Shown here piece after piece: positions 22,078 to 51,418 of a stretch of 64,000 nt of DNA. The translations under genes were made by a program, and so were the position numbers. A model generated the notes under the pieces. The model saw only the letters and a program-made list of their open reading frames with translations, made no database searches and was not told where the DNA came from. The first letter of the stretch is position 1. Each line of letters opens with the position of its first letter. This DNA is from Lepidodermella squamata (taxonomy: Eukaryota > Animalia > Gastrotricha), in assembly GCA_047495785.1 (NCBI GenBank), contig JBLDXI010000015.1:2232001-2296000 (forward strand), read 5' to 3'.

Positions 22078-23855
22078 ATGGCGGAAATTGAATTAAAATC
22101 AGAGTGCCAGTGTCCCGAGCTGTTGGAGTTGGTCGAAATCAGTGTACCCGAATATTTAATCGTCGCCATTCAAGCGTATCCACCTGAACAAAAAGTCCTA
22201 ACCGCTCTGGTCGACTACGCCCGCGAATCGCGGTCGCTCATTTCGAGCCTTTACGAATCGGTCTCCGCCTTGAAAAATCACTGCGCTAAAATCGCGGCTC
22301 AGAATGTCGACGATGGCAAAACCGATGATCTGAAGCAGCAACTGGCTAATCTCGGCGCTATGTTTGTCGCCTCTCGGTCGAAGCTGACGGACGCTGAGAG
22401 TGAAATTAACCGGCTACGAGGCGAAATTGAAGAGCTGAAGAAATCGAGAATCAACGCTGAAAAATGCGAGGCTGAGAAAGAGGCGAAACTGCTGGAAACA
22501 ATCTCGCAGCTGACTAAACTGCTGGCCGCTCAGCCGCCGGCTTCTAAACCTGACATCAATTCAAAAGCTGACCGCGACTACAAACGTGACTACGAGCAAG
22601 AAAAGGCGCAGTTTTTCAAGTTTCAGAAAGAAGCGAAAAATTATCAGCAGTTTTTGAAGGACGAATGCAAAAAGGCGACGGAGGAATGTGAGCTGTTGAA
22701 GAAGGAACTAGCGAGTCGTCGACCAAGTTCGGTCTTGCGAAAAGGCGAAATTCATCTTGACATCGACTGCATCGCCTCAGTAAAACGGAAACGATCCCTG
22801 GACAACAATCAACATTTGTCTTGCCCTGGTAATTAATTTTTAGAATTTTAGAAAATTTCAGAAAATTTGCAGAATGGCTTATTATATTATCTCGATCCCA
22901 TGTTACAAATAATGTATAATTTTTTAATGTTTTTTCGCCAGGTGACTCCTTGGTCGAATCGACTAATTCAAAACTGCCAGCCGCCGCTAGTCTTTCTAGT
23001 CCGCTATTCTGTGAGGTAAATTAATCCGTTAATTATTTCCGCTAAGCATAGGGAGGATTATCCGCCTCCTTGGCGTCAAATTGGGCAAGGGTGACATTCT
23101 AGGATAGGTGCGGCGATTATTCGCGCGCGGCGATTCAGTGCTGAAATTGGGATGTATTATCGACGATTATTCGCGTTAGCTAATTAAAGGTGCGACCTTA
23201 AAACTGTAATTTGTAATTTATAATTTTTTAAGCGCTAAATTTAGCGATTTTTTTCTGATTTGTGCAGCGATTTAAAAAAAACGAAACTTTTTACCCAAAT
23301 AATTTCGTGTAAACTCAGCAATTGTGTGGTTAGAAGCCGAGCAATAATTATTAATGGGCAATAATTTAATCATATTTCTGGAAATTTCAAGTTTCACTGA
23401 AAATTTTCGTCCGCCCGCTCTGAAAGCACGACTCAGCGTGAATGACCTGCACTGTGGATTTGCCTCAAAGCAAGTGACCACTTTTTCATAGATCTGCATT
23501 AATATATTTTGTCAGAATTTGCGGAAATAGGTACTTGAATCCACTAGCGCTTTAATTTGTATTAAATTAATTTAAAAAAAAATTAGATAATCCAGTAATA
23601 TTTATTTTCCAATTCGAATTTTTACATGTCATTTTTACGCAGGCGTGTTCGACGACAAAGAAACTGGTGCGCCGTGTTTGCGATGAGCTGGAACAGACCC
23701 GTCACGTGATCAATGTCCGGCTAAAATCAATTTCTCAAAGCAACTGTTCATCGCAACGCCATCCCGCTAATAATTCGGGCGACGAGCTGCCTTTTCTCAG
23801 GCAAGTCGCCCAACTTGTCTCAGCAGCATCGAAAAATCTCCGGGCTATCGCCTGA
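22078..23855 (+). CDS. Family A coiled-coil protein, paralogue 1 (exons 22078-22828, 22942-23015, 23643-23855)
   Basis: ATG follows an AG acceptor. GT-AG junctions keep frame into the 23667 ORF. Heptad-rich body, KRKRS basic patch, terminal DELPFLRQV helix. Confidence 0.75.
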
Positions 23856-24358
23856 CATAGTCAGCGTTGTCCCTTAATTCCACCCCCAACGTACGGTTTT
23901 ATCGAGAAATCAATCAGCCAAGCTTTAATTGTATACTGTATATCTGATCATTTTTCAACAACATAATATCGTGTTCGTTTTTTGTTTACTCGCAATACAC
24001 GCGAGTATTATAATATTTTGCGCGGCGAAAAACGAGAGATGATGAATAAAACATGACAACTGAGCAAACTACAAGCTCAAATGATCGATTTTTCTTGTTT
24101 TAAAGTGAAAAAATAAGCTGTTATTGGGCACCTACATAACGCAGTTTCTTGCTTCATGCTCACGGCTGTAAATTTCACACACCTTGATGATCAATTTTTT
24201 CCCTCATTATTTACACTATTATAAGGTGGCAAAGGAGCTTGCCCTATCTCGTAGAAGAACACAGCAATTTTCATCACGAAGCCGAGTCTTATGCGTCTAA
24301 ACTTTGTATTTTTTTCTGCAACTCCATTGTCTTTTAAAAGCCTAGTTTATCTACAATA

Positions 24359-24622
24359 ATGAGTGGCGAGTTTATGGCCTTGAACCCTTGTGATTATGAC
24401 GTCGAACAAGCGGCCCGGTACCTGACTGAAATTGTCATAATAGGCGCGCTGAAAATATGCCTAGCCGAGGATCTAGTCATGCGGAACGGCTCGAGCAAAA
24501 GCAGCTCCGAAAAGCAATCTCTTGTCGGCTTGGCTAAGCGAAAATTGAAAATATTGGACGAGTGTAGCGCGCCATTAGACGATGAGACATACATGTCGCC
24601 TAAAAAACTTATGAGAAGTTGA
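24359..24622 (+). CDS. Small 87-aa orphan ORF with an amphipathic AKAP-like helix and basic patches
   Basis: ATG-initiated ORF with GC higher than its flanks. Contains DVEQAARYLTEIVIIGAL, KRKLK and SPKK; AATAAA lies downstream (~24687). Confidence 0.45.
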   Translation: MSGEFMALNPCDYDVEQAARYLTEIVIIGALKICLAEDLVMRNGSSKSSSEKQSLVGLAKRKLKILDECSAPLDDETYMSPKKLMRS

Positions 24623-25266
24623 TAAATGAACCGCCGATATATCAGCTCTTCGCCTCTATCAGCTATGCTCATTCGTATGGTTAGAAAATAAAATCTGACT
24701 TCTAATCTTGATACTACCATGATTGATAATTGTGGTCGAATTCGAGTTTCGCTAATTTTGGCTGAGATTGCTCGTGATTTCATTGCTCATCATTGCGAAA
24801 CATTTCCATGATCGGTAACCGCGAACAAAAAGTGGCTCCAGCTCGAGCCCAATGCGCGGCTTTCTTCTAAGTTATTTTCCCGATAACAAAATTTCCGCGA
24901 AAAGAGTCATTTTTGATTACTAAATTTTACAGAGGCCGATTTCGCTGCGAAACTCCATTCTCTTTATCAAGTTCATCTATACGAAATTTTGAATTTGAAA
25001 AATTCAAAAATTCAACCCAAAAATTAGAGTGAAAGGGAACGGGAATCGTCTGAAGCCGGAAGTTGTGTGTATTTTAAGTTGCTCCTGCAGAGGCTTCTGC
25101 TCATTTTCGGTGGTCGTTTGCTCTAGAAAGATTTAATTTTTGATATTTTTTCTTAAATTTTCTTAAATTTTCAGCTCAATTGAAAGAAAAATAGTTAATT
25201 TCATCTTTTGTACAATTCATTCGCAATATAGTTTAGTATAGGAGTGCTACGTCGCGGAAAATAAAA

Positions 25267-25422
25267 TACCGTATTGTTCCTACCTAGCAGCCCGGGTTGC
25301 TAAAATTTCAACCTCGAAATTTGGAAGATTTCAAAAAATAATTGTGGATGTTTTCGAACCGACTTGACCCCTCAACCTTGGGCTACACTATTAGTGGATG
25401 GGCTACTATTGGAACAAACCGG
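25267..25422. mobile_element. Degenerate short MITE, Tc1/mariner-pogo-like (CCGTA-type end)
   Basis: Left end TACCGTATTGTTCCTACCTAGCAGCCC pairs imperfectly with right end GGGCTACTATTGGAACAAACCGG. Confidence 0.45.
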
Positions 25423-26648
25423 GCAAATTCGATAAACAGCGGAATCTTAACAGAAAAAATCTTTGCATTCCAGCTCGATGGCGGAATTGATAACGGGCAG
25501 AAGAGAAATTAGAGGGGAACAATTGATAATTGCGGAAGGGCTATAGCGGAAATCCCCCGCGAACTATGCGTCTACGATGTATTTCCGCTGACTGCTTTCC
25601 CTGCTTCATGTTTCAAGAGTCATTTCAATAGGAATTACGCCAAAAAACTGAGCAATTTTAATGAGTGACTCGGATCCACTGAACTATCGCTAGTAATACT
25701 GTTGTATTTGTTGATTATTAGAAAAAAATTGTACAACATTTCAAGTTCAAAACCCAAGTCTTGTGTAGTGCGAAGCCGGGTTCATAGGGGTGATTCAAAT
25801 TAGTGCGTTAACTCAAAAAGAGCCTGTTTGTTTTTTTGTAATATACAAGACGGAACGTGTAGTACTATACAAACCCGCCGTCAAATTTCGCCCAAGACAC
25901 GTATTCCAACACTCACTGCTCACGTGGTGAATCTCATACTGCCAAAAAAATTACAACGGCTGCATTATTACTATCAGTGGCGCATCGCGTGAAAAACAAA
26001 GCCACTAATAATAAACTGCAGTAGTTAAAAGCTTGTCTGCAGGTAGATAAATGCGGTTCTAGCCGGACACTTTTTTGTTCACCTGAACACAACGATGACA
26101 CATACACATAGGGCTTAAAATGACGGTTGAAGGAACACGCTTAGCTTGCTCATCACTTAAATTTTATGAATGGCGCCATGCGCTTGCGGCGGCACTTATA
26201 ATGCAAAATAATTACATTATAGGTATGAACCAAACGAACACGTAGACACTAACACGAGAGCATCTTCATCAAAACAAAAGAACCCTTATGATAAATGTTT
26301 GAAAAATAAATGCCGTCCTGTCAAGAAATACAGGGTTGTCATTATGCTGGGTTAATCGATTTTCGCACCGAAAATAAAATCGTAAATTTTTAAAAAAAAT
26401 TCGCTATTAACCCCTTATAAACCAACGATTTATTAATAATTTTCTGAAAATTATTGGAATTTTTATGTAATTTTTTAATATTAATTTAAAAATTTGAACT
26501 ACTTTGTCAAGTTTTGCTTCGAAATTCTTTTGTACACATTCGCATTACGAATTGAGTTCGGTCACTCTATTTCTCATCCTCTCAACATTAATGTTTAGTT
26601 TGAATTTTATTTAATGTGAACTTTTAATTAGAAATTGTGTTACAAAAA

Positions 26649-27919
26649 ATGGACGATCCAAACCGCACCTGCTCGTCGCCCCTGTTAGTTATCGACGAAA
26701 GCAGCAACGACTCCACATTTGTCCCAAATAATAAGCCAGATATTGCTACTCAACGGCTGGAAAATTTGTTGAAGCAACATGACATTCAACCACAGGCGGC
26801 GGTTGTTCTACGCCAAGCCTGCGCGAAATCGCAATCGATTCTCGTCGCCCTTGTTCAACTCGGAAATTCATTTAAAACACGGGAGGATATGTTAACCCAC
26901 CAACTTAACGCGGCTAAGGAAGCTAAAGCGAACCGTGATCGAGAGGTGGCTCAGCTGGCTATGGAAATTACCAGCCTAAAATCGCAGGAAAAATCTGCGG
27001 AAAATTCAGAAGATGGCGAGCCTTCGCCCATCGAGCGCGAACTTGGTTCAGCTCGCATGACCGCTGTTCGTTACGAGCAGGAATGTGAGACTCTCCGGCA
27101 TAGGATAACTTTCCTAGAAACTCGAGTAATCGAAATTATCGAGAAAAGCCGGAGAGCGATTGCGCATGTCAAGTCGAGCTTCGAAACCAAGCTTGTGGCG
27201 GAACAAGCGAAGGTGATCGAGCTTGAGAAGAAATTAGAGACGCAGCCAAAAGTCGTCGATACTCGTGGTTTGGAGGTGCAAGTTAAATCACTGGAGGAAG
27301 CATTGGAAATTGAAAGGAAAAACCTCCGAACAGCCTATGAATGCAACTGCAAATTATTCGCTGATTTCCGGGTTCGAATCGAGGAGAAGTCGAAAGACCT
27401 CGAGGAGGCTCGCCAGCAGTTATCTTCTGAAAGGAACCGCGCTGAATTACTTGCGAGCCAAGTTCAGCAGCGGGAGGCTGAGCTGTCGACGTTGAAAATA
27501 GACTTCGAAATGAATGTATTGAAAGCGAGGTTTGAACGTGCCTCGGAACAGCAGCAGAAGGAAATGTCACGGCGGCGAAAACTACAAATGTCAAGCGTCA
27601 GCAGTGAAGCGAGTGAATCACCTGACTTACTGGCGCGGCCAAATTCTAAAATTGCTCGCATTATTCTCGGAGAGGGCTCAGGATTACCCCCACCATCAGT
27701 ATCAGGTTAGAATTGATAACTAAATTTTCTGAATTTTTTTGAATATTTTCAAATTAAAATTTTTAAATTATTTTTAAATTATTAAAAATGTTTTTGGAAT
27801 TTAATGTCTAATTTTAATATAGGAATTCTTTTTATTTAATTTTCTAAAAAATTATTTTTATACTTTCAGGCGTTGATTTTCTGGATTTTCTTGGTTCGCC
27901 GATGCCGAAAGGACTTTGA
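26649..27919 (+). CDS. Family A coiled-coil protein, paralogue 2 (exons 26649-27705, 27870-27919)
   Basis: Long heptad ORF. N-domain LENLLKQHDIQPQAAVVL...ILVALVQLG...REDMLTHQL; RRRK patch; phase-1 intron to a short terminal exon. Confidence 0.75.
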
Positions 27920-29514
27920 TCAGTTTTCAAGTATCGAAAATTACCGGTTACACCGAAGAATCAATGGAACAAATCCAAACATACCTATACTATAACAAGA
28001 AATAACTCTCAAAACTCATTGTTGGATGTATTTCTCGAACTAGGAAAACTTATCGATAAAAATCCGGAATACTTATTGATTTACGTCTAGAACTCTCTCA
28101 GCTCACTATTTCGAGAAATACTACTACAAGCGAAATTGTTTTCAATGGATTCGCTACAATTTTTCTGCAGCGAATTAGCGGATTTTTAGACAAAAACCGC
28201 CGATTCGATCTGCGCGTCTTGAAGCTTTTGCTTCAATTCCTACTGTGACCGCGAGTTTAGCACTGGCCGCAACTTGGACATTCTGAATGACCCGAGCCTT
28301 TCACTTATTATTGTTGCCTCTTTTTCGGCGTGCGCGTTCTTTAAAGATTATTTTTCACAAATGATTGTTTCGAACTCGACGACTTCCACCTTCATTTTTC
28401 TTTTACTGTTCCTCATTAATTGCTTCACGAATTAATTACTCATATAGTTATACTTCTTTATGTGGTGGAATGTCCTGCGAGTTTGATGACTTTCATTCTG
28501 TGAATTTTGAGCCTTTAATTAACGCGCAATTTTCTTCTGCGGCCATTACTAAACAAAATTTCGTCCCTTCAACACCCGGATGTGATTTAAAACTCGATTA
28601 AAAAAATATCTTCTGATGCCGGCATCGTTAAAAATGGATTGTTATTCGTTGCGATGTAGGCGTCTCGATCACATTTTCAACTTTTGGGGGTGTTGAAGGG
28701 GAAAAATTCGAGAATCAATCACTCGTATCATCTTTCGAAAATCGCGGAAATCATTTGTAGCGGATGCGTTGTTCTTTTTCTACCGGCTACTTTTTTGTTG
28801 CTTTGTTTTGATTTCTAACTCTTAGTCCTCCTGTTTGATACACAGTCTCGTTAAGTTTGATTGATAAAAATGTGGAAATTCCTTCTTTACATTGATTTGG
28901 CTGAGGAAAGTCGCCAGATTTAATTATACGCTAAATTAAAACTTCACAAAAAAAGAAAAAATCCTTGAAAACCAATTTTCGAATACGAAAACGATCAATG
29001 TCGTGACTATGAATTCGCTGCTGTTACTATGTAGCTTTATGTGCCTCATTTAATTGATTATTTATTTAATTATTTGTGGAATTATATGTGAATATCCAGG
29101 TTTCGGTCCAGTTATAAAGAGCGCGAAATTCGATTCGCTTTCTTCATACTGCACTTTGTTGTTCATTTATTCGCTTCGACTTTCTTACTCACGACATGAA
29201 TTTATTAATGAAATAAAAAGATTTGAATGTAATCGCGCTTGTTTTATGAATGAAATAAAGCGCGGCGTGACCTAGATCAAATTGGCACACGACCCCGGCC
29301 GGTCGCAATAAAATTACAACCAGCCAACGAACGGACTGACCTCGCCATAAATCGATGATGATGCCATCAAAACAACACGCTGGATTACAGAGCACGTGTT
29401 TTTTCATTGTTACCAGATGTCGCAAAATGGTTTTTTCGAACGCATTTTAAAACTCCAGCTTAAAGTTTCGTGCACACAATTTATTTTTTCAATTTTGATT
29501 TTATTTCATTTTAG

Positions 29515-32500
29515 ATGCAATTAGCCAAATTTTACCCGCCGGCCTATCGTACGAAAGCGGTTCTTCCCGACCCTGGGCCTGATTTTGACTGGAATTATTT
29601 AGAATTAGCTCTACTCGACCTTGGCTTTCCCGTCGCTGTTTTCGACGGATTTCGCAGCCACTGGCCTGGCAACGAATGCGTTGATGGCGTTGTTATGTAC
29701 GCTGAAGAAGTTTTATTCCGCGAAAAATTTATTAACGATCAGCTAAATCAGCTAAAGGCCGAGGCGGAAAATTCGGCTAATTTTATAAAAAATCAAACTG
29801 TGCCCATCGCCGATTTTACGCGGCTTAAAGGCGATTTCGACGCCATTTCAACTCAATTACAAGAAAAATCTCGTTTATTAGACGAGCAAAAAGCCAGAAA
29901 TCAAGAGTTAGACCTGCGTATAGTTGCTGAGATTGAAAAATCACAAAAACTCGAGCAGGAGAAGGCTGAATTGGCGGTTAAATTCAATTCTACAGCCTCG
30001 ATGGAAACTCTCGAGACCGAAATCGAAACTTTACGCCAGGAATTGGAAATCGAACGAGCCGCTATCGATCAGTTGTCACGCGAAAAAGATGCTGAACGAG
30101 CCAATTTTATGGCTCAGCTGTCGAAGATGGAACAGGATTTGAAGGCCGCGGAAATGCATCACAAGGCTTCTTTACTTGAATTACAAGGCCGTTTGAGTGA
30201 ATCGCAACGCCGAGAACTGGCGATGAGTGAGAAACAACAGCGGGATCGGAAGAATTTTGTTGGCTGGAAGCAGCTGAAGTACGAGCCGACGAAAACGCGG
30301 CTCGAGGCGATGGAGAAGCAGCTGAAGGCGTTGGAGGCTGAACATCGCCGGCTGCTTGAAGATTCTGCGAATTTTCGTGTTATGGCGAACGTCGTTGTCG
30401 AATCGAAAGAGGTCCAAACGCAGCCTGAATGGTTGGAAGACGGCGAGTCGCCATCGAAAAAACGCCGCGTTGACGAAGGTGAGTTAATTTATTTCATAAA
30501 TGTTTCTTACCACGTGGGAAATTAATCGCAATTTTTAATCGAGAAATTCGCATTTTCGAATTTTATTTTTTTTTGTAATTTTGGCGATTCCCTGCTTTCT
30601 AAGCGGTACAGCGGTACAGCGGTACATAGAATGTAGTCGATTTTAAACTTTCACGCAGTTTCGTAGGCCGATTTCTAACAATATGAGAACAATTGAGAAA
30701 AATCATTGATGTGTCCCTTTCATCTTAGCAAATTGCTGTCCTGAAAATGAATAAATTTTGAATGTTTCGTGCCATTTGGAAATAGTATCTTTTCACCAGC
30801 TGAGCCTAATTCAGATAAATAATTTGGGGGTGTAGAATCTGCAGAAATGGGAAGCGTTGCTGCCGGAAAATGTAAAGCATTTTCAAAAGAATTTCAGAAC
30901 AAAAAAGACAGCATATTCGTCTTTCGTCAGATAAAGCTCTCTATGCTCGTGCGTGGCTGATTTCTGGTACAATTTGATTTAATATTTAATTCGGTTTAAG
31001 TAACATCGGGAAAATCCAGCATTCCTGCCGGTAAGTAACGCAGATTCCACACTCGTGAAAGAATTTTCCAAAAATCGAATGGAACTTCACAACTGTCATG
31101 GGTTTTAGCAGTGTTTTTTGTTTCAGAGCGCTCGGTTGTTTTATTTGATTTTTCTTGGCTGGTAACTTCCGTCAAATTTCAAAAAGTCGGGTGTTGCTTT
31201 GGGAAATTTGTGATGAATTTCAGCAAATCTATCGATCGAAGCGAGACATTATTCTGGATTTAAACAGATCTTAAATTTAATCGGCATGAAATAATTTAAC
31301 CAATCGCTGTATTCGTTCTAATTTGCGGGACCTGGCGGCCGTCCTCTCCTTGGTCGATTCGAAGTTCCGGCAATGCGAAGAGGCCTAAACTCAAGGATGT
31401 TCCTAGCTTGATGAACCTATTCGATAGATTAATCATCACCGAAGAATAAAAACATCGTTGAACTTTCTTTGCGCGTCTACGACTGCTTATAAGAGAACGC
31501 TGAAGAAAATCAGCAAAATTCGACTGATTTTTGTTGAGTAATTCCTTCGCGATAGCGTTCTGTTCATCCTCATCAAAGTCAGTAAGAAAACATTTTAGCG
31601 GGCAGAGCTGGTCGTGGAACTCCTATTTCCTTGAAAATCGTTGTAAGCTTGGTCTTATTCAGAAAAGGCGAAATTGGAAAAATATCATTGCAATTTTAAA
31701 TGTTCCACCTGGCGACAAGCGACAAATGATGATACGCGTAGACCTTACCGCTGTGGGCCGATGACGGGCCAGAAAAGGTCCGAATGTCTACGTAAAATGA
31801 TCAAACATGAGGAGAAAAAACTTGTAAGTTGACCAAAAATGAGTTGCAGGTTTTTTTCGTCGAATATCCACTTCGGCCGCGTCTTTTTCCCGCCTTGAGA
31901 TTTCCTGGCTCTTGGCCGCTAATTGTTTGTGAGGTTAACGTTTCGACGCTAGAGAAAATTCAGAACAGGCCTTAGGCGTAGACGCCAGCGTCAGGATGCA
32001 GGGTTACAGGGTTTCAGTACTTGATTACGTAGTCAAGTTTTGCCCAAAAATATGACCTGCAATTATCTGAAAAATGATAATAATTCCTCAACAAACAGCG
32101 CTTCAATGGTTCAACATTCGACCATGCGATCTAGGTTTTCTTTTTGCTCAATATTGAAATTTGCTTGTTTTTTGCTCCCACTATGAGTCCCACTTTCCAT
32201 AAATTGAAATTACAGAATTTTTCAACTAAAACTTACTTACTTATTGGTTCCAAGCGAGTTGGCTGCTTTAAATACCAGAAATTTAAATTGAAAATGAATT
32301 TCAAAAATGATAAGAAAATACTCTGGAAATTGCAAAAAATCATTTTCAATTCGGTTTTTCAATTGATCTATCGTCAGCCATTCTTGCTAACATATTCCTC
32401 GCATAGTTTTAATCGGAAATTGTTCCTAATCGGGATTTCATAGCTGAGCTCTGTAAGTTTAAACAATTTTCAAATAATGCTGGAGCCAGGATTGTCATGC

Positions 32501-34881
32501 CGTCTCCACAAGTCATGATTAAATCTACTTTTCTTTCATAACATGGCCGTATATTTTTTTCTTGTATTTTAGGTGCCGAAGATGGCGGCGAAGGCTTGAC
32601 GAAACACGAGGCTGAGCAATTAAATCAGCAAATTCAATACTGGGCATCCATGTTCAAGCCGCTGCAGGAGCAAAACGATAAAATGAAAGAGGTATGAAGT
32701 TTTCCTGTTGAAAATGTAAAATTTATCCCATACAAATAACTGAGCTTAATCGAATTTAATAATTGATTGCTCGCCTTTTCGAATCTTTTAAAAGCCGTTA
32801 TCGCTATTTGAGAAGTTTGAAAAATTGCCGAAGTGAAATGTAGCCGTCGAACTTATTCACGTTCTCGAACGCGTCGAAAGCGTCGGAACCATCGAAATAT
32901 TAAATTTTTTTATTTTAAATTAAACGCATCGGAAAATTCATCGAATTATTTATTCTTATTGTCCGATGTTTGAAGACATTATGTTCCATGAAATCAGTCA
33001 TGCGTGATGAGTCGAAAATCAAAAACTAATTAAGTCGCCCTGCCGGCCGCGACAAACCGCTGTCCCTTTTCCAAGGCTGACTTGTAGTCGACCACGTCCA
33101 CGGCCCCAACCAGTTGTAAGAGTGGTTTCAGGAGCCTGTTGAATCAATTCCAGCACTCGACCGAGGGTTGCCTGAAATGAGGTGGCATAAACTTCCTTAA
33201 ACTTCGAAAAACTTATTATGCTCTGCCGTTCCCATTGCTTGCAACTGCGAGTAAAATGTAAAATGAGGTGGAATTTTCGGGTTTTCGATCCGCCAATAAA
33301 AAACTTATGGCCACCGTGGGTCACCTTGTGTATGGCATCGTTTTGAACATTCATTGCAACGACCAGAAGATTAAGGGGCTGCTGTCCAAAACGGCTTCTT
33401 ATCCTTTTCTGCCGTTGTTTCGTCGACTTCTTAGTGGACGAAGTAGGATTGCTTATCATCGACAGGCTTCTGTGTTCGAGATTCACCCCAGGCGCGACGA
33501 TCAGTGGTTCTGATAGAGCTTGAAAGTGAGTCAGACCTATTCAGTTGCTATTCGAAGTTTTCGCTTCAACTGCCGTTTCAATTTGGCGATTCGCCTCGTT
33601 ATAGTCTTGGAATGGTCTTAACGAGTCCTGATATATACTCGGGCGAATCTTGCACATGTCGCCTCACCTCGATTGTTTTAAACACCTGTCGACTGGCTAG
33701 GATGCTTATGAGCGCCGCCACACAATTGAATGAACCAATTGACATGGGATTTCGCTGGTCTGAGCGCCCTGAGCACGCTAGTAGTAACTGATTTTCGTTA
33801 TATTCTGGAAGCGGAAGCTCTTCGTGATTCTGAAAATGGAATTTGTTAGTGAAACATTTGGGGTCTAATAGCTCTTTATCGACCTTTTCGAAACTTGAAC
33901 CACAAACCGAACCGGGATTAAACAGGGAATACTCATACTCATACTCATTTTATTGCAAATTGTTTCTCAACAGTTTAAAAACAGTTGGTTTTACCCAGCC
34001 TGTCGGGCTGCGTGAACGAAAATCGGGGTTTGCGAGGCCTAACGTTTATAATTGTTAGCTCACTTAATCACTTTCCACGCTCTTTCGAACCGTGATTTAC
34101 CATTAGCGAACTTACATTTAGTGTTTATTTATTGCGATTTGTTCAATTTTAGAAATACGATCGTTTCACTCGGCTGTTCAAAGAAAAACTGGCTTCGCTT
34201 GAAAACTCCCTGGTGGAGCATCTCGAAGTGCTAGCCGAGCCGTTTCACATTCAAATGGAGAGGTCTTTCTTGCGAAGCTTCATTCGTACGATCATCGATA
34301 TCAAGGAGGAACTTGCCTGCGGGGTGGCACCCGCCGGCGCCCTGGCAGGATGCTTTGACATCGCACCCGTTCGGGAAACAACCCCGGCCAGCGTGCCGTC
34401 AGTTTCGACGATCGCATCAACGAGTTGTCAAGGATCGGCGCCAATGTCACGCCAATTTTCTCAAATGGAGACGTCGACACCACTGAAGCAGCCGAATAGT
34501 GCCGCAGAACCTGGTGACCGGAGCGGGGCGGAGACGCCACAGAGTGGGTGCAAGTCAGTGTTTGGCGGTCGGGTGTCAAAGCCGGACTTTTTCGACCCGA
34601 GGCTCCCGAGGCAACCAGCAGCGGCTCGAGATGTGAAAACGTTTGCGAACAAGCGGCGGACCCATCGCGGTCGTAAGCAATTCGGGCAGAATTACCAGGC
34701 AAACAAGGCGCTGAGACCTGGTAACAATTATTATCAACAACGGGATCACGGCGGCCGGGGGTTTGGAGGCCCAGGTACGTCTTATCGGGGCCATCAGGGT
34801 CGGCCGCATCGATCTTCGACGCCTCCGTTTCGGCATCGGAGTGTGGATTCAAAACACGAGCCTTTGCATTCAAAGAAATGA
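29515..34881 (+). CDS. Family A coiled-coil protein, paralogue 3 (exons 29515-30478, 32573-32691, 34152-34881)
   Basis: Junctions GAAG|GTGAGT, TTTAG|GTGCC...GAG|GTATGA and TTTAG|AAATAC join in frame with the 34213 ORF. SPSKKRRV NLS-like motif, ERSFLRSFI helix, Arg/Gly-rich tail. Confidence 0.75.
30603..30626. repeat. (GCGGTACA)x3 tandem repeat in intron
   Basis: Read directly from the sequence. Confidence 0.85.
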
Positions 34882-39088: not shown

Positions 39089-39387
39089 ATTTAATTTGAC
39101 TTCTTTAAAATGATGATAATTGTTGAGGTATAAGTTCGTGAGCTGAAGACTCTCGTGTGACGGCATTAGACTGGCGCAGTCTAGCGTCTAGCCGACATTC
39201 TAAGCCTCAACATTTTGTATTTTGTAACATCGGGAGGCTGGGAATTTCAAATAGCTTTGTGCCCGTTAAGTCTCAAGTCCCACTTCCAAGGTCATCCCGC
39301 CCCTATCCTTATATGAGGTGTGTTCCCGGTCTCCCAGCTTTTTCTCCCAATGGCGCATTTCTCCGGTAATTTCTCCCAACCGCTGCA

Positions 39388-40955: not shown

Positions 40956-42128
40956 CGATCTAGTCTGGTGAAATCAGAGAGGTGGCTTAATTTGCATATT
41001 GCGATTTCTGTGTAATGTTCAAATTTCCGTCCTCCATTTTCATATTTTTCGATTTACATTCCATTTAAGGTATCTAAATTACAACTAATAATAATAATAA
41101 TAGTTTCTGCTTCAATAGGTCTGCTGTTTAAAAACGGACCTTATTGTTTCTGATGCGTCACGCACATAGGGTGACTACGCACTAATAAATGCACCAGCAC
41201 AATCGACTTTTTCGAAATTCTGATCTAGCTTCAACAAGATTCAACTACCTAATCTTGTCCAGAGTTTGATCAAACCCTAACTAATCCATTGTCTTTTTTA
41301 CAGTTTAGCTCTCCGATTTTTCTAAAAACGGTTGAATGGCTCTTAAATAAGTAAATAACTAGCTAAAAAGGGCCCTTCATATACGGCATGTCTCAAATAG
41401 TTTGTCTCCTTTTTCCACATAAGGGGCATCCATAAAGAAGGTCACGCTGAAAAGCGCAATTTCCCGACCTCCCGCCAAAGTTGACGCCTACTGCTTTCGC
41501 GTCACATTCTGGGGTCTCCCCTTTCCTTATATCGCGGGGCGGGCGGTGGGCGACAGAACATAGATCTGTGCCATGCTAAATCAATGAATTATACGGCTTA
41601 GTAACGCGATTATCATCGATAACCCGTGCTTTATCTGTTACATATCGCCACAAGAATCCGAATGAATAACTGTTGACGCGTGAAATGGCTCAGGGTGAAA
41701 ATTACGCGGCGGTCAAAATCAGGCAGAAGTCGGATAATCCTAATGAGCTTGATGAATGAGAAAGTTCAACCCTTCCGTTATAAAAAAAATTACAACTACA
41801 AAAAATCATCGCACGGCGCACTTTTAGCCATTGAATGAACGAAAATCATAATCAGTTGCGTACGCTTCTCGCACCACAATACAAACCAAATTTGCAATGA
41901 CTATAAAAAGTCATAAAAAATTCGTAATTTTGCGCTATTAGACACCCTGATCGCGAGCCAATATCCGGAAGTGATCAGAATACGAATACATTTATCCTTT
42001 CACGACTCATGCTGAGTGCAGGATCTTCTTATACCTGTGGTGAATCTCTTACGCCTCGACCAAAAAGATGCCTCCGAAATTATCACTATAGCGCAAAGGG
42101 TGATTTAAATTTGTAACCTTAGACCTTA

Positions 42129-43338
42129 ATGGATTTAAAAAAAGGTTTCGATACAAAACGCTCAGCTGAATTCGCTCATGTGATGGAATGCGACTTGTTA
42201 GAACTCGGATATCCGTCGATTGTCTCTTCCATTCTATCAAATTCTCCCGGCCTCGATTTGATCAGCAATCGCTATCAAATAGCCGCGGCCCTAAAGGACT
42301 ACGGCCAAGATGCTTTGTCTCGTGAGCAGAATCTTGCCAATATGGTTGTCAAGCTGAAATCAGAGCTGGAAGCTTGCCCGAAACCGACGGATGATCAGTT
42401 GATTGTCTCAAAGGACGAGCTCGAGCGGCTGAAAATAGACAGCTCCTTAGCAATCGACCTCCAAGAGCAACTGAAATGCAAAGCCGCGGAAATATTGAAG
42501 AATGAAGAAAATCACAAAGAGCAATTAAGCTCAATGGCTAACGAAATCGATTCATTAAAGGCCGAAATAGAGAGGCTGGTGACGAATGAGGCTTGCTTTG
42601 GTTCGACACTGTCCAAATTGGAGGAAGAACTCGCTAAAAGCCGGCGAATCGCTAAGATCTTGAGGCGTGATCTGTTTGACGAGCGGTTGAAAACGTCGAA
42701 ACTTGAACGAGAAACAGCTGATGTTCATCATCAACAATTACAAATTCCGAAAAATGAATCAGTCACTCTGCCCATGAAGATGGATTCCCCCGTGGAGATT
42801 CAACTCGAGGAGCAGAAGGCGAGCGCTCACCGTCTGGCGAATATGCTGCAGGAAAGGGACTTGACAATTGCCGACTTGCAGGAAAAGTTGGAAAAAAGCG
42901 GTAAAGAACTGAAGCAACTTATTGAAATTCAACGCATTCCCAGCTTGCTGCCCGATAATTCACAATCAAATGTAAGCTAAAACTAATAAACATATAGAGA
43001 ACTGAGCACTATTTCCGTACAACTACTTGTAATTTTTCTTTTTTCTATAGGGTGACTCCAAGGAGATCGTTGATGCATTACTGCAGCGTTTGAAGGATAG
43101 GCTGCGTCAGCTCGAAGACCCATTCCCGCTGCGAGCTTACGCTGCTGAGCGGTCGTTTGTGAAAGAATTGATCGAATCTATCAATGAATCGAAAACCCGA
43201 TTGAACATCAATAATACCGACCTTCTATCCTATTCCAGCAGCCTGAAGACGGCGCTTCCTCGCAGGTATCGGAAAAATAATCGCTTTTCGCTTTATCCTT
43301 ATCAGATAAACTGCGGCCGCGCTATCTTCAATATGTGA
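42129..43338 (+). CDS. Family A coiled-coil protein, paralogue 4 (exons 42129-42971, 43051-43338)
   Basis: AAT|GTAAGC...TATAG|GGT joins in frame with the 43090 ORF. N-domain MECDLLELGYPSIV...ALKDYGQDALSREQNL; ERSFVKELI helix; basic tail RRYRKNNR. Confidence 0.8.
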
Positions 43339-45070
43339 GTAAATAAAACACGTGTGAGGATTGAGAAAAATCTTAGCCTTGGCTTCACATTTGCTCATCA
43401 TATTTTACTTCTCTCAACAGGTTGTTTTCTCTTTCAGCTATAGAATGCCATATGCCGGCTTTGTTGTTAAAATCGATAGTAGCCGCAATAACATTTTATA
43501 ATATTTTATTTATTTATTCCAGTTATTCATTCCCACCGAACGATGATAAACCCTGTTTGACCCTTCACCAACGCTGCATGTGTTATTTATAATGTATACT
43601 GAGCGGAAGGCGATTTATAGAAGAAGCATCCACACTATGGCCACTATTGATATACGCATGTGCGCGCGCTTATTCCCGCGGTCAGGCGATTTTATAACAT
43701 TATTTCTATTATTACAGCGTATAGCTATAGATTCTCTTAGCGCTGCTGCCCAAACCGCGCCTGGTAATTTGATATTTCATTCCGCGTTTTTTTTACAGAG
43801 CGGCATAAAAATGTAAAACATACGATCGCATTGAGAACTTTTTTATTCTGCAAAAATCGATTTAATCTTGCTGAATTAGCGCGCGTAAATCGATGGCTTG
43901 CGAGCATTCTAATAGGCGCTGTTATTTCTGCAAGAATACTCATTATATGAAATGCCGGCCAAAAACACGTTTTTTCTGTATCAATGGTAAGTCCGAAAAC
44001 CATAAAGCGTATAAAATAATTTCGACATCTACATCGACTTGCACATCGGCTTATGCAATACATTTTCCGCTTTCTCGTATTAGCTCGTATTAAAGATTTT
44101 ACATATTATCAATGTTTGACATTGTTGTATTTCAAAATTTAATTATTCTAGGTACAATCTAATTCCCTGCTATCTGAGCGCATATCAAATGTCCACTTAA
44201 TTCTGCTATTTCACTAAAATATTTTACTTTTTCTCTGTATGAGAAACGCCGACAGGTCGAATAATGCATAATCGAGTGCTTGTAATTGCGACCGGAGGAG
44301 AAATAAGCAAACTCACTACCATATTTCGGCCAAGGCCTGAAAAATCGTCACATATTTTGTTATTCGAAGTGCCTTCCCACTCTCACGATCATTACTTTTT
44401 AAACTCCATCTGAATATTTGATTTCATTAAACATTCACTCATTACTCATATTCGGCCTATATATATCGCAGAAAATTTATGAAGAAGAAATGTCAGCAAT
44501 ATCGTGCACAATGAGAGAACATGAACCTCAACAGTTATGCCTTTTGACATGAATTTGCGGCCTTACTACAACAAACAACCGCACGCAAAAGGCCTAATAT
44601 AGCCAGGTAAATTAATTGCACACATGCAATATATACCTCTCATTTACAAGTTATATCATGTGAAGCGGCTATAAAACGACGCGGCTTCTATTCAACCACA
44701 CACCGATGCATACAACAGTTTGCGATTGATGAGTGCAGCCCGGGGTCATGCTGCAAGCTATTTCATATGCCGCGAGTGCGTTTTGAGCCGCTCGCGCTAA
44801 TGAATTCGCTTATATACTACATCAAGCCGCAAAATGCGGAGGCGAATTTGGCAACGGCAGCGTCGTAATAACTTGAAAGCGCCGTAAACATAACCAATAC
44901 AGCGGCGGGAGGCTGCAAACCCCGTGAAACAATACGGTAAAAACAGAAGGCTGCAAACCCTACGTCGATGTGAACGCAGAGTCTATATAAGCCTCGAAAA
45001 ACAGGCTTGCCGCTGCCATTCGTGCGCATGCTTGCTAATACGAAAGAAGCATCACGCTATTCATCTCACC

Positions 45071-45778
45071 ATGGCGCAGTCACGATCCCCACAACGCTCG
45101 AGCCTATCTACCGAGGAGCGGCTACGCATTGAGCTTAACGAAGTCACAGAAGAGCTCAAGGCCGCTGAACGCAAATTCATCCAACACGTAGATCCATTGA
45201 GCAGACTTCAACGAGAGCAAGCTGCCCAAATTTCGAGCCTGAAAAATGCGGTGGGGCAATTGGACGACATCAATCGCCGCCAGAGCGACAGAATCAAGAC
45301 GCTGGAAGCAGCTTTACTGCGGGCGGTTTGCAATCGCGAGAATACATCAACGCAATGCACTGATTCTCCTGCCGCAGTCATAAAACTGGCTCTGGAAAAG
45401 GAAGTCCTGCAGTCAAAGCTTGGAGAAATCGAGCGATATCTCATCAAAAAATTGCTCGAAGCTGAGAAAACCTCTGAAATAACCGATCCTTACCTGAAGA
45501 AATGGCGCGAGAAAAAGGGATCATACGTCAAGCCGAAAAGTGAACCGGTCGAGCCGTTGAACCAACATGAACCTGGAAACAACACACCGGCGAAAGGCTG
45601 TTTAAAGCGAAAAGGTGAGTTTAACAAAGACGAGCCATCAACTAGCAAACGAGCCACCGTCTCCACCTCAACGGAATCAGTGGAACAAAGGCGCTCAGAA
45701 ATTCCGCGAAAAACCAGAAGCCAAATTCAGACCCTTCGATCCGAGAAAAATGGATGGAAATGGCTGCCATCGAAATAA
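45071..45778 (+). CDS. Single-exon coiled-coil protein with a basic disordered C-terminus (orphan)
   Basis: ACCATGG start context within the 284-aa ORF. Heptads in the N-terminal half; KRK...KR patch. Confidence 0.65.
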   Translation: MAQSRSPQRSSLSTEERLRIELNEVTEELKAAERKFIQHVDPLSRLQREQAAQISSLKNAVGQLDDINRRQSDRIKTLEAALLRAVCNRENTSTQCTDSPAAVIKLALEKEVLQSKLGEIERYLIKKLLEAEKTSEITDPYLKKWREKKGSYVKPKSEPVEPLNQHEPGNNTPAKGCLKRKGEFNKDEPSTSKRATVSTSTESVEQRRSEIPRKTRSQIQTLRSEKNGWKWLPSK

Positions 45779-48700
45779 CAGAACAAGACCAGATTTACAA
45801 GGCACCGTGGTGCCATAAATAGACCTGAAATAGGTCTATCAAACATGATTCTCACCAGTGAAACCCTAAACCGTTAAGGGAAAAAGACTTGATGTATTTC
45901 GCACCTATTTTATCTTGTGCCAAGTCGCAATACCTTGCCTTTTGCATGTATCTTGTGTTTCTACCGAGATGTTGTTTGTAAAAAAGTATGTGCTCAATTG
46001 TTTCTCTCATTATTAGGATCTTTCTGTTATGAATTATAATTATTTGCGACTTTTCCTGTTCGTCTTGATATCTATCGTGAGTTTTCTTTTCTTGGCCGCG
46101 TGAATTAGAATAAATGCCTCCTTCAACAGGATCCGAGTCCATCATCTGACCGAACAGCCAGGAGACAGCAGAATATCCGATTGAGAAATTCAAGGGCCCG
46201 GCTTGCGCGTTTGATTCGTTTGATTCATTGCGAATCATTCGCGCAACCACCCTTGTATGGTCAATCTGCTGATCAAACGAACCACTGCACTGTCCAGCAA
46301 CGCAAGTTCTTACCTAAATGCACGCTAGTTATGCAGTGTTACGCATGGCCCACTCGAAGATAATCAGAGCTGATCGCTGATTTTGATGAAACAAAATTTC
46401 ATCCATTTCCGAGTCACACTATCACGTTCGGAAAGGGGGAGGATTACGTTGCAGCACATTCCTTTGAATTTCATTGACAGCCGAAAAACATGAGGAGCCG
46501 TACCTGTGAAACATTTTCGAGAGAGAACCGATATTTCTGCTTCCGATTGTTTTTCAAGTGTTGAGATTTCGTGAGAGTTCGGAGTTTGATTGAATGGATT
46601 TGAACTCATCGAATCGAAGCGGAACATCATTGATCTTCGGGTGCACGCATGAGATGCATGGGTTTTTCCTGAAACAGCTTATAATGTCAGCTTTGTACTA
46701 GCAGCCTATATCAGCAAATAACATCAGTTTTAGTTTCAATATTTTAAATGGATTTTTATTTTGGATTGGAATACTGTTATGTAAACTTCACAGCCCGTAA
46801 ACTCACAATATGAGATATCCTTTCGATTTGATGAGTTTGATATTAACTCATGTTAATATTTAGAGTTTCCGAATGTTGATGATGGTTGACAGCCTAATTT
46901 TTATTTTGGTGTGTATTGTCGGATTTTCGTGTTTCAGCCGGTTGTTGCGTTGGGTAATATTGATACCAAATTGTCGGACGGTTCGAGAAAGAGTAATTCA
47001 GAAGTTTCCTCATCTCTCCTAACAGGAACCGTCAATATTCAAGGAAATTCAAGAGGCATTAGAACCAGCAAAAAACAACTAAATAATTTGCCTACCTGGC
47101 CTTTAAGCCGATGATGAATTAGCATACCAAAGAGAATTATTTCCATGGTCTCGTAGGCTGGCAATGATGGTCTCATAACGGAGATTTACGAGTTACAATT
47201 TACATAATATTAAAACTATAGCTAATTCACAACCCATCACTGCTCTGCTTTGTAACTGATTTTGTATTGATGAATCGCGGTTTTATTCCTGTTCGAAATC
47301 ATGTGACGCCCGGGAACCAGCACGTGTTTACATAAACACGCGTCTCCACCTTTAGTTAGGCTATATGGTAAACATAACTTACAATTTGAATACAAAATTG
47401 TTGAAACTATTCGCCGACACGATTTGGTGTTTTCTGCTTATTTCCGCTCATTTCGCTGTACGAGCTTGATGAAAGAGCCACCCTTCTACTGAAGCACATG
47501 TTTCCAATTAGAGTAACTTACTTTATTATTTCGCCGTGTTTTCTTGTAACTCCTAATGGTCTGCGGACGTGGCCGTTGATGAAATGCGTGTTCATTATGT
47601 TGTTCTGATTTAGGCTTACCCACTGGTTTTAAGTTCCCGCCACTAGCTAGTGCTGCCTTATTCAAATTTATCAGACCACTACTGTTGTTTAATCCAAATC
47701 CCGCGCTTAAATCAGACGAACGCGCGCTATCGCACGTTCGTTGAGTGTTACACTGCGTTACGCCGCGCGCACTTGAATTCCACCTCAATAATACGGCTCA
47801 AGTGCGAATTGTTACGCGCGCACGCCATCGCGCGCAAATCGCGGCGCTCTGAGTGAGCCTCCATGCTGTGCCACTAGCGCCACATCTTCAACCCTGTATT
47901 ACCACATTTCCATGTAGATGGGCATCAGTCTCACATGACGCGATATGTGACACTAACAACGAGGTCGGTAGTTTACATCCTCAATGCATCAAATTTTAGC
48001 ATACAGAAATGTAATTTTGATATAGATAATTCTAAAGAAAATCCTTTTAAAATGTAAGTCAGCAATACCCGCATAGATTTTAATTTTAATTCGACGCCTT
48101 TATATTATATCAGACTTTGACCCAAAATGCGTTCTATGTTGTTCGCGCGCGGCCTAAAATAAAGAGTAGCTCTAGTCAAATATAGTGTTAATTACATCCA
48201 GGTTGCTTCTATTTCGAGGGCAACAGCGAATTTTTCCTTGAGGCTATGCCTGATATTATTGTATTCATAAGTGCATTATGTTCACTTTTGGCTTGTTATT
48301 TTATTACCAAGACGCGCAATAAAACCGCGACACCTTATATATCATGACTTGGTCATTAATCCTGAGTACGTTCTGTTGACTATTTTTTATGTTCGTAACC
48401 AAATGACACTACAGTCGCTTGTAGCCATTTTCCTTCTCTTTTAAAAAATAAACGCTGCGTTCGAGAAATGATTCACCTGGAAAACAACAACAAATTCTGC
48501 GTGGTTTCGCCACCTGGTCTTCAGCCAATTTTCGATGTGTTTTCTCAACAAAGCTTATTCACGATTTTTCACCTCGGGCGAAAGCGGTTGAAAGTCGCCG
48601 TGAAATTACTGTGTATGTCAAAATGATTTTCTTTCGAAATTTGTTATTTCTTGTACTTACTAATCCTACTAATCTACAAACGAAAATTCTAATTTCAAAT

Positions 48701-48932
48701 GCAACATCTGGCGAGTGTTTCGTGTTTTCGACCTGTGTTATGCAGTCATTTCTGACAAACAAAAATAGGTCAGCAATTCTGCGCTTGTTATCAACTTTGT
48801 CAAGATTAGATAGTTTTACGTCAGCGTTCAAAGACCTTCTCGATCTATGTCGTTTTTACTTTTGACTTTCATCTTCACTCATTTGTTGAAATGATTTCTT
48901 CGTTTTCGTAGGGTTATTATGACTTCTGGTTG

Positions 48933-51418
48933 ATGCATGGTAATCACCACAACAGCGCAGGCTCCGGGTCTCGGCACGGGCTGCCAGCCGGCGACCTTTC
49001 TTCGTCTTCAGCCACCAACAGTGTGGAAACACGCGTCCGCAAACTGATTGAAAACACCTTACGCGAATGTCACGCTCCGGAAGTTTTGCTGGAGGCGATG
49101 GCCAAGTTTTCCCCGCCTATAGATCTAGTCGAGGCAATCGGCATGTTTGCAGTGGAGCGGAACATGCTGGAGTCCGAGCTGCAAGATTTGATCGTGAAAA
49201 CCAAGTCCGAACGCGATGATTTGAAATCAGCGGTTGAGATGAAGTCAATGGTACCGCGGTCAGAGTATGAACGCGTTCTGGAGGAAAGGCGAATCGCAGA
49301 GGAGCGAGCTTCGACTTACGCTGAAGATATTGCTAATCGAAATGTGGAGGTTGAACGTTATCAGAAAGAAGTTGGCCAATTGAACGGCTTCATCCAACAG
49401 CACCTCGACGCGATCGATAGGATAGCTCGCGAGAAGCATGACTTGATCAAAGAAAACAACCACCTGAAGTCCCAAGTCACTACCCCTGCCGATCAGTCTC
49501 AACTTCCAAGAATTATTCAACTCGGCAATCAGCTTCAGGCGGCTCGAAAAGAGATTGCTGAGCTGACAAAAAACAACTCGGATTTAACCAAGCGCAATGA
49601 AGAGTTGGCAAGTCAAGTGGAAACTGCTCGAAAGGCTGATCAAACTCTTAGAATAAAAGAATTGGAGCTGAAGTTGTTCGACAAAGCGAAGGCTGGTGCT
49701 TTGCTCAGCCAAATGAACTCGGAAAAGCAGTCATTGATCGAAAGGCAAAACGATCAAATCGTCAATCTCCACAAAGAGCTCGATGCTCTGAAGCAATCGC
49801 AGAAGTCTTTAGCCCCGATGGCGGAGGTTGAGGCTCTCAAGCGAGAAGTCACGATGTTGAAACTTGAAAATGGTCAGAAGCTTGGCTTGATCGAGGAGAA
49901 GACGCGGCAAATCTCAGACCTAGAGTCAGAATTACGCGCGAAGAACGATGAGATAACCCGTGTTACGAATATGAACAAGGGCTCTGCAAAGCAAATATCC
50001 GAATCGCAAGCCGAATGCAAAAAGCTGAAGCAAGACTACGCTACGCTGAAGTCTAAATCTGAGGAGGAATTGGCAAGTCTTCAGCAGAAAAAGCAAGACC
50101 TGGCCGCTGCTGTTTCAAAAATCGAAAAGTTGGAGGAAGAAATCGTTCGATTGAAACGAGATGTCACAGTCCTCGATGCTGAGAAGACGCTAAACAAGAC
50201 GAAGTATGCGTCGGAAAAGCGAAGCTATGCTGACTACCACGCGAAAGCTTCGGGAAAAATTGAGTTCTTGAAAAAGGAGAACGATATGTTCAAGAAACAT
50301 ATAGAAGAATTGAAGGGGAAGCTTCGTAACTCTGGTAGCACGCCGAGTGACACTGCGGCCGGTGCAACCCCGATTATAGCAACTCCCGAGGAGCCTGTTT
50401 TCGAACAGCAAACACCCGAACATGACTCCTCGCCTAGTTCTTCCGCCAAGGTGCGAAGAATTTCAGGTAGATTTTCGTTATTTAATATTGTCAGACTCTT
50501 ATTGTGACTAATTTGAATTCAGCTCCCGTTGTGAGTTCCTTCTTGAGCCCTGAGAGCACCTCTGCTCCGAGTCTTCTTGACCCCGAGGAACTGGATCAAC
50601 TCAACAATACGTTGACGCAGCTTGTCGGGGTTAACAACTCTCAAAAGTTGGAAATCGAAAAACTGCGTAGCGAAATCGACCGGCTCAACGCTAGGCTTGA
50701 CGAATCGAACGATCTCACTGCTGAACGCGACAAGTTGAAAGAAGATCTTGCGAAGAAGACCGAAGAGGCGGATGTAGGAATTTCAATACTTCTTTTTACA
50801 CATTTTATTTTAATTTGTTATCAGACATTGTTGAAGCGAAAGCAAGAAATCGAGGACAAGTTGTTCAATTTGGAACGTCGTCTCGGTCAGCATATTATCA
50901 AACTGGAAAATACAAGGTCGTACCATGAATTCGATCTCTATCAAGAGCGCCGTTTCCTCGAAACTGTTCTTCGCGAGCTGAATATTGGCAGTATCGAAGA
51001 TGGTGAATGCATATCTTTGATTGACGAGGCTTCGAATAAGTACGACGGGTCAGTTTCTTTGGCTCAAAATCCGGTGAAGCCTGAAGCTGATAGTTTGCCC
51101 GGCCCTGAAATACCGAGACCGCCGAGCAGCGATAATTCTATGGAGTTGCCGAGTCATAACCCCTATTTGAGGCCTTGCATTTCTCCCGAGGTCGTACCTT
51201 CGCTCTATGATTCCCGCGATAATCGAGCTCGCGACGATTTGAGATCTGAAATTCGTACTTCAATGCATCCGCGCGGAACTGGTTTTCGCGGCAGACCTTT
51301 TCGCGCTCGCAGTCCGATGAGAGGTAGAGCTAGTCACGGATCTGGCCCGGTGTTCAGACCGAGAGGTGGCAGTCTGTATAAGCCCTACAACACGTACAGA
51401 CGAAACGAGAGGAACTGA
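48933..51418 (+). CDS. Family A coiled-coil protein, paralogue 5 (exons 48933-50466, 50523-50773, 50825-51418)
   Basis: About 400 aa of heptads. TCAG|GTAGAT...TTCAG|CT phase-1 intron, plus a 51-nt in-frame AT-rich intron at 50774-50824. ERRFLETVL helix; RG/RGG tail. Confidence 0.85.

Follow-up and report, generated by a model that had tools for sequence, protein, structure and literature searches.

Several described systems resemble, each in part, the genes analyzed here. The transverse-filament proteins SYCP1, Zip1, C(3)G and SYP-1 have a short N-terminal region for self-association, followed by a long coiled coil that dimerises in parallel and by a basic tail with the potential to bind nucleic acid, and they show no sequence conservation between phyla. 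The Cor1/Xlr/Slx and GOLGA6/8 genes form lineage-restricted tandem arrays of co-oriented coiled-coil genes. At the scale of small domains, RIIa and Dpy-30 join a helix-turn-helix from each chain into a four-helix dimer core, and the UBA/CUE domains, the GA module and the protein A domain adopt an up-down three-helix topology within ~45-50 residues. Here we report on five co-oriented genes, A1 to A5, located in a stretch of 64,000 nucleotides (nt) of the gastrotrich Lepidodermella squamata (G000:C15:2232001-2296000, hereafter the window), which we analyzed together with the 121-Mb assembly of this species (151 contigs). We found that these genes belong to a real orphan family of coiled-coil proteins that is larger than first noted and carries a new small head domain, with a mechanism that is plausible at the level of assembly.

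The family can be compared with transverse-filament proteins by architecture alone. Those proteins are encoded by single or few genes and have no defined three-helix head, whereas the present genes form a tandem family with 26 or more members, many of which lack a basic tail. The Cor1/Xlr/Slx and GOLGA6/8 arrays are young and similar in DNA sequence; in contrast, the copies described here present no detectable DNA similarity and are under purifying selection, and the family gives no Pfam match to Cor1 or to golgins.

The observation of five related genes was confirmed. The initial annotation had proposed that they are anciently diverged paralogues with an unrecognised N-terminal domain, and all the N-terminal strings quoted as instances of this domain were located in open reading frames (ORFs). 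The stated lack of obvious DNA similarity also held, as blastn among the five genes returned nothing at E ≤ 0.01. Pairwise identity of the proteins ranges from 11 to 27%, and A3-A4 was the sole significant pair by BLASTP (E = 1.5e-5; collinear from the N-terminus). When the whole genome was searched, a profile of the five N-terminal sequences recovered five untrained paralogues (best new E = 5.9e-5), in each of which the head opens an ORF and a coiled coil follows, and a profile of ten sequences recovered 21 loci. Untrained members reached E-values down to 1e-13 and were always found at the N-terminus, ahead of the rod. Leave-one-out hidden Markov models (HMMs), for which all 2108 open segments of the window served as the search set, recovered A5 (E = 3e-9), A1 (E = 3.3e-6) and A3 (E = 5e-5). 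The E-value of A2 was 0.19, yet it was the top non-training segment of the 2108, and A4 was weak (full E = 8.4; domain E = 0.037). Smith-Waterman z-scores were computed against shuffled sequences with the coiled coil cut off, and each of the five genes kept a partner at z > 5 in this masked comparison (A5-L013, 10.5; A1-L013, 8.5; A3-L020, 7.9; A2-L031, 6.6; A4-A3, 5.3). The partner of A2 is the paralogue at C15:1794792, and the tree of N-terminal domains joins both (support 89/84). We conclude that A5, A1 and A3 are strong members of the family and that A2 and A4 are weak but positionally consistent members.

Features outside the head were also shared. Most members present a methionine just ahead of the head and a TAG splice acceptor just upstream. 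About 25 residues past the head, the motif V-[PSH]-x-x-[DE]-[YFL]-x-R-[VL] was found in register in A3, A4, A5 and the C15:2477103 paralogue, which agrees with the earlier statement that three of the five genes continue with V-x-x-x-[DE]-[FLY]-x-R-[LV]. A C-terminal motif, PF....ER.F[LV] (hereafter the C-motif), is common to the predicted exon 2 of A4, exon 2 of A5 and an open exon at 34171-34881. Searched genome-wide, the profile of these three sequences found its own three instances only, which makes the C-motif a local subgroup feature rather than a family-wide one; phmmer with the tail of A5 returned no match. If the likeness were a matter of chance among unrelated coiled-coil genes, one would expect pairwise identities as low as those observed (11-27%), and A2 and A4 indeed fail or barely pass the leave-one-out test. 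However, chance does not account for profiles that recover untrained members with E-values down to 1e-13, always N-terminal before the rod, for masked z-scores of 5-10, for a second motif shared in register or for the confident AlphaFold model obtained from the family alignment. We consider chance highly improbable for the set as a whole, and this reading is effectively refuted already for A1, A3 and A5.

The initial annotation had described an array of five. The five co-oriented paralogues stand, but they make up one of several clusters. The whole family has at least 26 genes, which are spread over ~350 kb of one contig apart from two dispersed copies (table). Members were counted using genome-wide profiles and local HMM scans of the surrounding DNA; this count is a lower bound, with half of the 380-kb region scanned. 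Many members of the largest cluster (cluster I) consist of a head and a rod only, with 300-450 amino acids (aa) and no basic tail. The genes of this cluster are spaced by only ~200-300 nt, which suggests that they may be organized in operons. In the tree of N-terminal domains, only one of the 20 inner branches is well supported, and the window members present the longest branches (1.8-3.0 changes per site vs. a median of 0.85). All family genes, including loci L013-L032, present an unpaired pyrimidine-rich TAG acceptor 0-35 nt 5' of the ATG (0-21 nt ahead of it for every gene of the window). Because acceptors precede the ATGs, we regard A1 to A5 as five genes that start separately and carry the shared domain at their extreme N-terminus. 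No further head domain was found in the intervals between the five genes, and A1, A2 and A3 may each have a single coding exon.

We further analyzed the predicted structure of these proteins. They share a common plan over ~250-800 residues: an N-terminal three-helix head of ~50 residues whose helix 3 runs unbroken into a heptad-rich rod. Coiled coils were called with our own heptad heuristic rather than with a published predictor, and the heptad-rich sequence, poor in Pro and Gly and rich in E, K, L and Q, represents 54-71% of each first exon, in agreement with the coiled coil reported to follow the head in all five genes. Using a 23-member alignment, AlphaFold2 modeled residues 27-105 of A5 with a predicted local distance difference test (pLDDT) of 94.1 and helices at 2-19, 24-33 and 37-78. 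The head alone (53 residues) was modeled by AlphaFold as a compact three-helix bundle (pLDDT 90.6). The ESMFold2 homodimer of A5 residues 27-156 reached interface scores (ipSAE) of 0.60, 0.58 and 0.60 in three runs, relative to 0.00 for the best of 3 controls, with at least 91% contact agreement between runs and a partner pLDDT of at least 84. The model is parallel, with contacts in register (43:43, 57:57, 64:64, 71:71) and contacts from helix 2 to the partner's helix 3 (26:43, 30:39, 29:39), and its interface includes the conserved hydrophobic residues L26, M30, L39, A42, I43 and F46 (model numbering). When this test was calibrated on microbial proteins, 21 of the 30 solved as pairs of one chain attained the mark and none of the 23 solved as single chains did; for eukaryotic proteins the respective counts were 17 of 29 and 0 of 30, with only 1 of 7 among those without an older solved relative. 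These models support the view that the head is a dimerisation cap. Two chains would pair in parallel and in register, and helix 2 of each head would pack on helix 3 of its partner, so that the conserved L-P..L...I ... LV.AL..[YF] positions would make up a dimer core of four helices, capping and nucleating the coiled coil. Located outside the interface, helix 1 would be free for other contacts.

Expression and selection were analyzed for A5 and a pair of paralogues. Run X1 has the character of RNA: coverage by its contigs is confined to 48955-51726, the flanks being bare, and one contig omits exactly 56 nt (GT..AG), which unites the two ORFs of A5 in frame. Run X2 was considered to be DNA because it covers the entire 5.5 kb and lacks this 56-nt joint. 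A5 is transcribed and spliced. A second haplotype, ~2-3% divergent from the window, was observed in both X1 and X2 (47000-52500), and both haplotypes are present in the RNA contigs; alleles this divergent would be in keeping with clonality or parthenogenesis. The comparison of the A5 haplotypes is a sample (40 of 149 differences listed). Among the differences listed, an in-frame 6-nt deletion at 49644 was the sole coding-region indel, and the 39 coding differences comprised 29 synonymous and 9-10 non-synonymous changes. As non-synonymous sites outnumber synonymous sites ~3.5 to 1, the ratio of non-synonymous to synonymous polymorphism (pN/pS) is ~0.1. The youngest pair of paralogues (2162352 and 2164762) presented a synonymous divergence (dS) of 0.38 and a ratio of non-synonymous to synonymous divergence (dN/dS) of 0.35, with 0.19 for the head and 0.38 for the rod. 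The coding sequence of A5 is under purifying selection. The description of the cluster as fast-evolving is not supported by these values: the family is old and very diverged and, where measurable, it is constrained rather than fast-evolving.

The claim that the family has no known relative was supported by every library searched, namely Pfam, the Protein Data Bank (PDB), the ESM Atlas, a set of 1.84 billion representatives and a metagenome scan. Neither the five ORFs nor nine paralogues gave a specific Pfam match and, even with the threshold relaxed to E ≤ 10, the 23 heads had no recurrent family. A match in the rod of A5 to DivIC (29.6 bits vs. a cut-off of 28.9) was taken as coiled-coil noise because this family is bacterial and the match falls within the rod. 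The families Cor1/Xlr/SYCP3 (PF04803) and golgin were not matched, and the remaining coiled-coil matches in Pfam were scattered and all sub-threshold. Nothing was retrieved by a word-based protein search with A5 residues 20-140 or by the metagenome scan, conducted with A5 alone, and the PDB sequence profile search returned only noise from designed or short coiled coils. The ESM Atlas yielded features below 0.9 with generic coiled-coil names and, by shape, bacterial helical proteins. Foldseek and VIA-align found no specific match for the 79- and 53-residue models, to which dozens of unrelated helical proteins scored alike. The profile search of the 1.84 billion representatives produced four matches (E = 5e-6 to 6e-4) to multi-stretch repeats, i.e., ankyrin, bacterial repeats and a 51-residue tandem repeat 'GLPPQLQALID...AYLDRE', which we judged spurious. 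The blank in this library is weak evidence because the library does not contain the proteins of this genome, and other gastrotrichs are probably missing from it as well. As far as these sequence searches extend, relatives appear in this genome only.

Alternatively, the head could be a very divergent version of a known module (UBA/CUE, RIIa/Dpy-30 docking or helix-loop-helix zipper), and the family a derived branch. The hydrophobic-Pro pair that closes helix 1 recalls the MFP of CUE domains, and 'PP.DLV.A...[FY]A.ER' resembles by eye the 'PPDLVEFAVEYF' of RIIa, as does P-x-D-L-V-x-A-x-x-[YF]. However, the alignment of the family profile with the RIIa domains of this genome by hhalign gave a probability of 0.2%, and the Pfam models of RIIa, CUE, UBA and Dpy-30 found canonical genes and zero family loci. 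Genome-wide, RIIa (PF02197) was found at 5 loci, none in the family, with the five ORFs and 23 heads unmatched; CUE (PF02845) and UBA (PF00627) were found at 3 and 9 loci, none of them in the family clusters, and the 6 loci of Dpy-30 (PF05186) all lie outside the family. The bHLH-leucine zipper (basic helix-loop-helix) was rejected: helix 1 is without the preceding basic region of such proteins, and the heads gave no match to a helix-loop-helix profile. Relative to RIIa/Dpy-30, the family has an extra N-terminal helix, a post-Pro helix shorter by ~7-9 residues and a last helix that extends into a long coiled coil. Relative to UBA/CUE, it presents no sequence match, and its head is predicted to dimerise at the start of a coiled coil and not to bind ubiquitin. 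Since in addition no Pfam family recurs among the heads, we consider descent from any of these modules very unlikely.

The ends of the proteins are more variable. Basic clusters were found just past the rods of A1 (KRKR), A2 (RRRK) and A3 (SPSKKRRVDE), and A5 and the 34171-34881 exon have RG-rich ends. The C15:2477103 gene presents KKRGRKRK at the end of its first exon, and its C-terminal exon (L007:564-878, - strand, C15 ~2476100-2476450) ends in GKRPRGRPRKNK, an AT-hook-like motif of the HMGA type. Its KRPRGRPRK stretch scored 11.9 bits with the Pfam AT_hook model (PF02178; cut-off 17.4), the sole Pfam family reported there. No AT-hook-like motif was found in the five window genes. Judging from their sequences, these basic, RG-rich and AT-hook-like tails point weakly to a role in nucleic-acid or nuclear scaffolding.

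The best explanation of these results, which we hold with somewhat less than even confidence, is a constrained multigene family of head-capped parallel dimeric rods that are putative nucleic-acid or nuclear scaffolds. Our reading of the sequences suggests as a possible, still doubtful function that these proteins serve as long dimeric scaffolds or tethers with tails that hold nucleic-acid or nuclear partners. Pairing would be set by the heads, which may also connect rods head to head, the tails (basic, RG-rich or AT-hook-like) would hold nucleic acid or nuclear partners, and the many paralogues would provide rods differing in length and tail. Rather unlikely is the more elaborate possibility of a gastrotrich-specific toolkit of rods that tether nucleic acids, in which a new dimeric head domain would allow ~30 paralogues to pair, possibly mixed, and to join head to head. 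Rods of graded length with RGG or AT-hook ends would in this way assemble into a lineage-specific lattice, either nuclear or composed of RNA and protein, which might serve as a germ-granule matrix or take the place of a synaptonemal or chromatin scaffold. Several points weigh against the scaffold explanation. The AT-hook match fails to reach the cut-off and comes from a paralogue that is not part of the window, clusters of lysine and arginine are common in coiled-coil proteins, and many members of cluster I stop where the rod stops and are devoid of a basic tail. By profile, the membership of A2 and A4 is weak, the gene models of A1-A4 are predicted, and expression is established for A5 only, from one unlabelled run (X1). 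The pass of the homodimer is the model's own confidence and heptad sequences tend to be laid parallel, in a test that is poorly calibrated for eukaryotic proteins lacking solved relatives. The absence of relatives is itself weak evidence, as the big library did not return the proteins of the window.

Because many cluster-I members are devoid of such a tail, the probability of a purely cytoskeletal role comes close to that of nucleic-acid or nuclear scaffolding. These could be cytoplasmic structural proteins (fibres of the ciliated ventral epidermis, ciliary rootlets, pharynx or adhesive tubes) whose head drives filament assembly and whose basic patches are incidental, a reading that we regard as possible without favoring it. 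Tandemly expanded coiled-coil families are often cytoskeletal, the many cluster-I members made of just a head and a rod (300-450 aa) would suit such a role, and two cluster-I paralogues matched the intermediate filament family (PF00038) at 21-25 bits, the five window genes being unmatched. These matches are nevertheless far below the cut-off of 40 bits, the end motifs of intermediate filaments were not seen, and the structure searches tie the models with dozens of unrelated helical proteins; moreover, a role in the nucleus or in RNA-protein assemblies accords better with the RG-rich, AT-hook-like and NLS-like (nuclear localisation signal) tails of several members. The divergence of the family could also be explained by recurrent adaptation of germline, meiosis or genetic-conflict genes (synaptonemal-complex-like, germ-granule, or driver-and-suppressor genes like Slx/Sly and Xlr). 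A possibly self-associating head, a long rod and a basic tail make up the general plan of transverse filaments, C-terminal RG-rich tails are reminiscent of some germ-granule scaffolds, and both the tandem amplification and the long branches of the window members (1.8-3.0 vs. a median of 0.85) would be expected. But selection is purifying wherever measurable (pN/pS ~0.1 for A5 and dN/dS 0.35 for the pair, with the head tighter), which argues against genetic conflict without excluding it. No Pfam match to Cor1/Xlr or to another meiotic family was obtained and, to our knowledge, synaptonemal-complex proteins are not normally encoded by families of 26 genes. We therefore consider a germline or conflict role unlikely, and retain the constrained family of putative nucleic-acid or nuclear scaffolds as the preferred explanation.

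Gastrotrichs are nearly unexplored molecularly, and newly sequenced, poorly sampled phyla regularly yield lineage-specific orphan coiled-coil families. With several tandem arrays on one contig and a head that is absent from the searched libraries, this family (~30 genes, constrained, expressed) likely underlies conspicuous cell biology. The head is small, confidently modeled and predicted to nucleate a parallel coiled coil, which makes it an easy structural or biophysical target and possibly a new dimerisation module.

Table. Features of the family and of the five window genes. Positions are those of the window unless they carry a contig prefix (C15 is the contig of the window).
Feature	Position	Strand	Description and basis
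Cluster I	C15 2,124,513-2,183,295	+	At least 16 members; profile and local HMM scans
Window cluster		+	Five genes A1-A5; this window
Third cluster	C15 2,461,336-2,477,103	-	Three members
Dispersed copies	C3:2546699, C15:1794792		One each
Long ORFs	22042-22836, 26637-27710, 29515-30525, 42129-42980, 48930-50507 (continued by 50504-51418)	+
Unpaired TAG acceptors	22033-22077, 26605-26648, 29470-29514, 42085-42128, 48888-48932		4 nt (A1) and 17 nt (A2) upstream of ATG; immediately adjoining ATG (A3)
Gene A1	22078-22836	+	Apparently one coding exon, 252 aa; ORF and translation
A1 head domain	22111-22281	+	Heptad rod next
A1 basic cluster SVKRKRSLD	22777-22803	+	Sequence
A1 ATTAAA	23183	+	Poly(A)-signal scan
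Gene A2	26649-27710	+	353 aa; ORF and translation
A2 divergent head	26745-26924	+	Long heptad rod next
A2 RRRK	27564-27587	+	Sequence
Gene A3	29515-30525	+	336 aa, taken as single exon; ORF and translation
A3 head	29587-29763	+	Leave-one-out HMM, E 5e-5
A3 second motif VPIADFTRL	29800-29826	+	Alignment
A3 NLS-like SPSKKRRVDE	30448-30477	+	Sequence
A3 AATAAA	30750	+	Poly(A)-signal scan
Open exon	34171-34881	+	C-motif 34216-34323; RG-rich tail 34663-34806; own AATAAA 34967
Gene A4, exon 1	42129-42971	+	281 aa; ORF and translation
A4 head	42171-42365	+	7-residue insertion inside
A4 second motif VSKDELERL	42405-42431	+	Alignment
A4 predicted intron	42972-43050	+	79 nt, GTAAGC...CTATAG; splice-site and open-frame scan
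A4 predicted exon 2	43051-43338	+	95 aa; C-motif 43090-43206; AATAAA 43342; splice-site/open-frame scan
Gene A5, exon 1	48933-50466	+	511 codons + 1 nt; ORF, RNA-type contigs
A5 head	49035-49211	+	Leave-one-out HMM, E 3e-9
A5 second motif VPRSEYERV	49251-49277	+	Alignment
A5 intron	50467-50522	+	56 nt, GT..AG; removed in RNA-type contig (X1); sequence and frame checked
A5 exon 2	50523-51418	+	Further rod; C-motif 50894-51007; disordered tail; RG-rich end 51266-51370
A5 probable in-frame intron	50774-50824	+	51 nt; predicted from splice sites and hydrophobic 'translation'
A5 poly(A) signal AATAAA	51722	+	Matches RNA contig end

The heptad rod of A5 extends over ~380 residues of exon 1, and the whole protein has a length of ~790-810 residues. 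A short upstream ORF of 4 codons (ATG ACT TCT GGT TGA; 48920-48934) was observed in the leader of this gene, where it overlaps the main ATG at 48933. If A4 were left unspliced, its frame would reach a stop at 42980, with an AATAAA at 42985. The open exon that lies between A3 and A4 gave no Pfam match, and no head or rod exon was recognisable upstream; going by its sequence, it may be either a distant 3' exon of A3 (through a splice of ~3.6 kb) or the tail or remnant of a sixth gene. Within the cluster, a further co-oriented ORF (45071-45778) encodes a coiled coil of 235 aa and has a TATATAAG box upstream. It was rejected as a family member, being devoid of a head domain and of similarity to the family.

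Beyond the cluster, two neighboring ORFs previously assigned to a 'family B' (52413-53768, - strand; 61326-62822, + strand) gave no Pfam match, and a GT92 domain was also found among the neighboring ORFs; together with the domains named below, it marks the genome as that of an animal. At the other end of the window (487-11905, - strand), a chain of long ORFs presents C-type lectin, PKD, REJ, F5/8-C and WSC domains, a composition that identifies it at the sequence level as a receptor gene of the polycystin-1 / sea-urchin-REJ type whose exons are unusually long.

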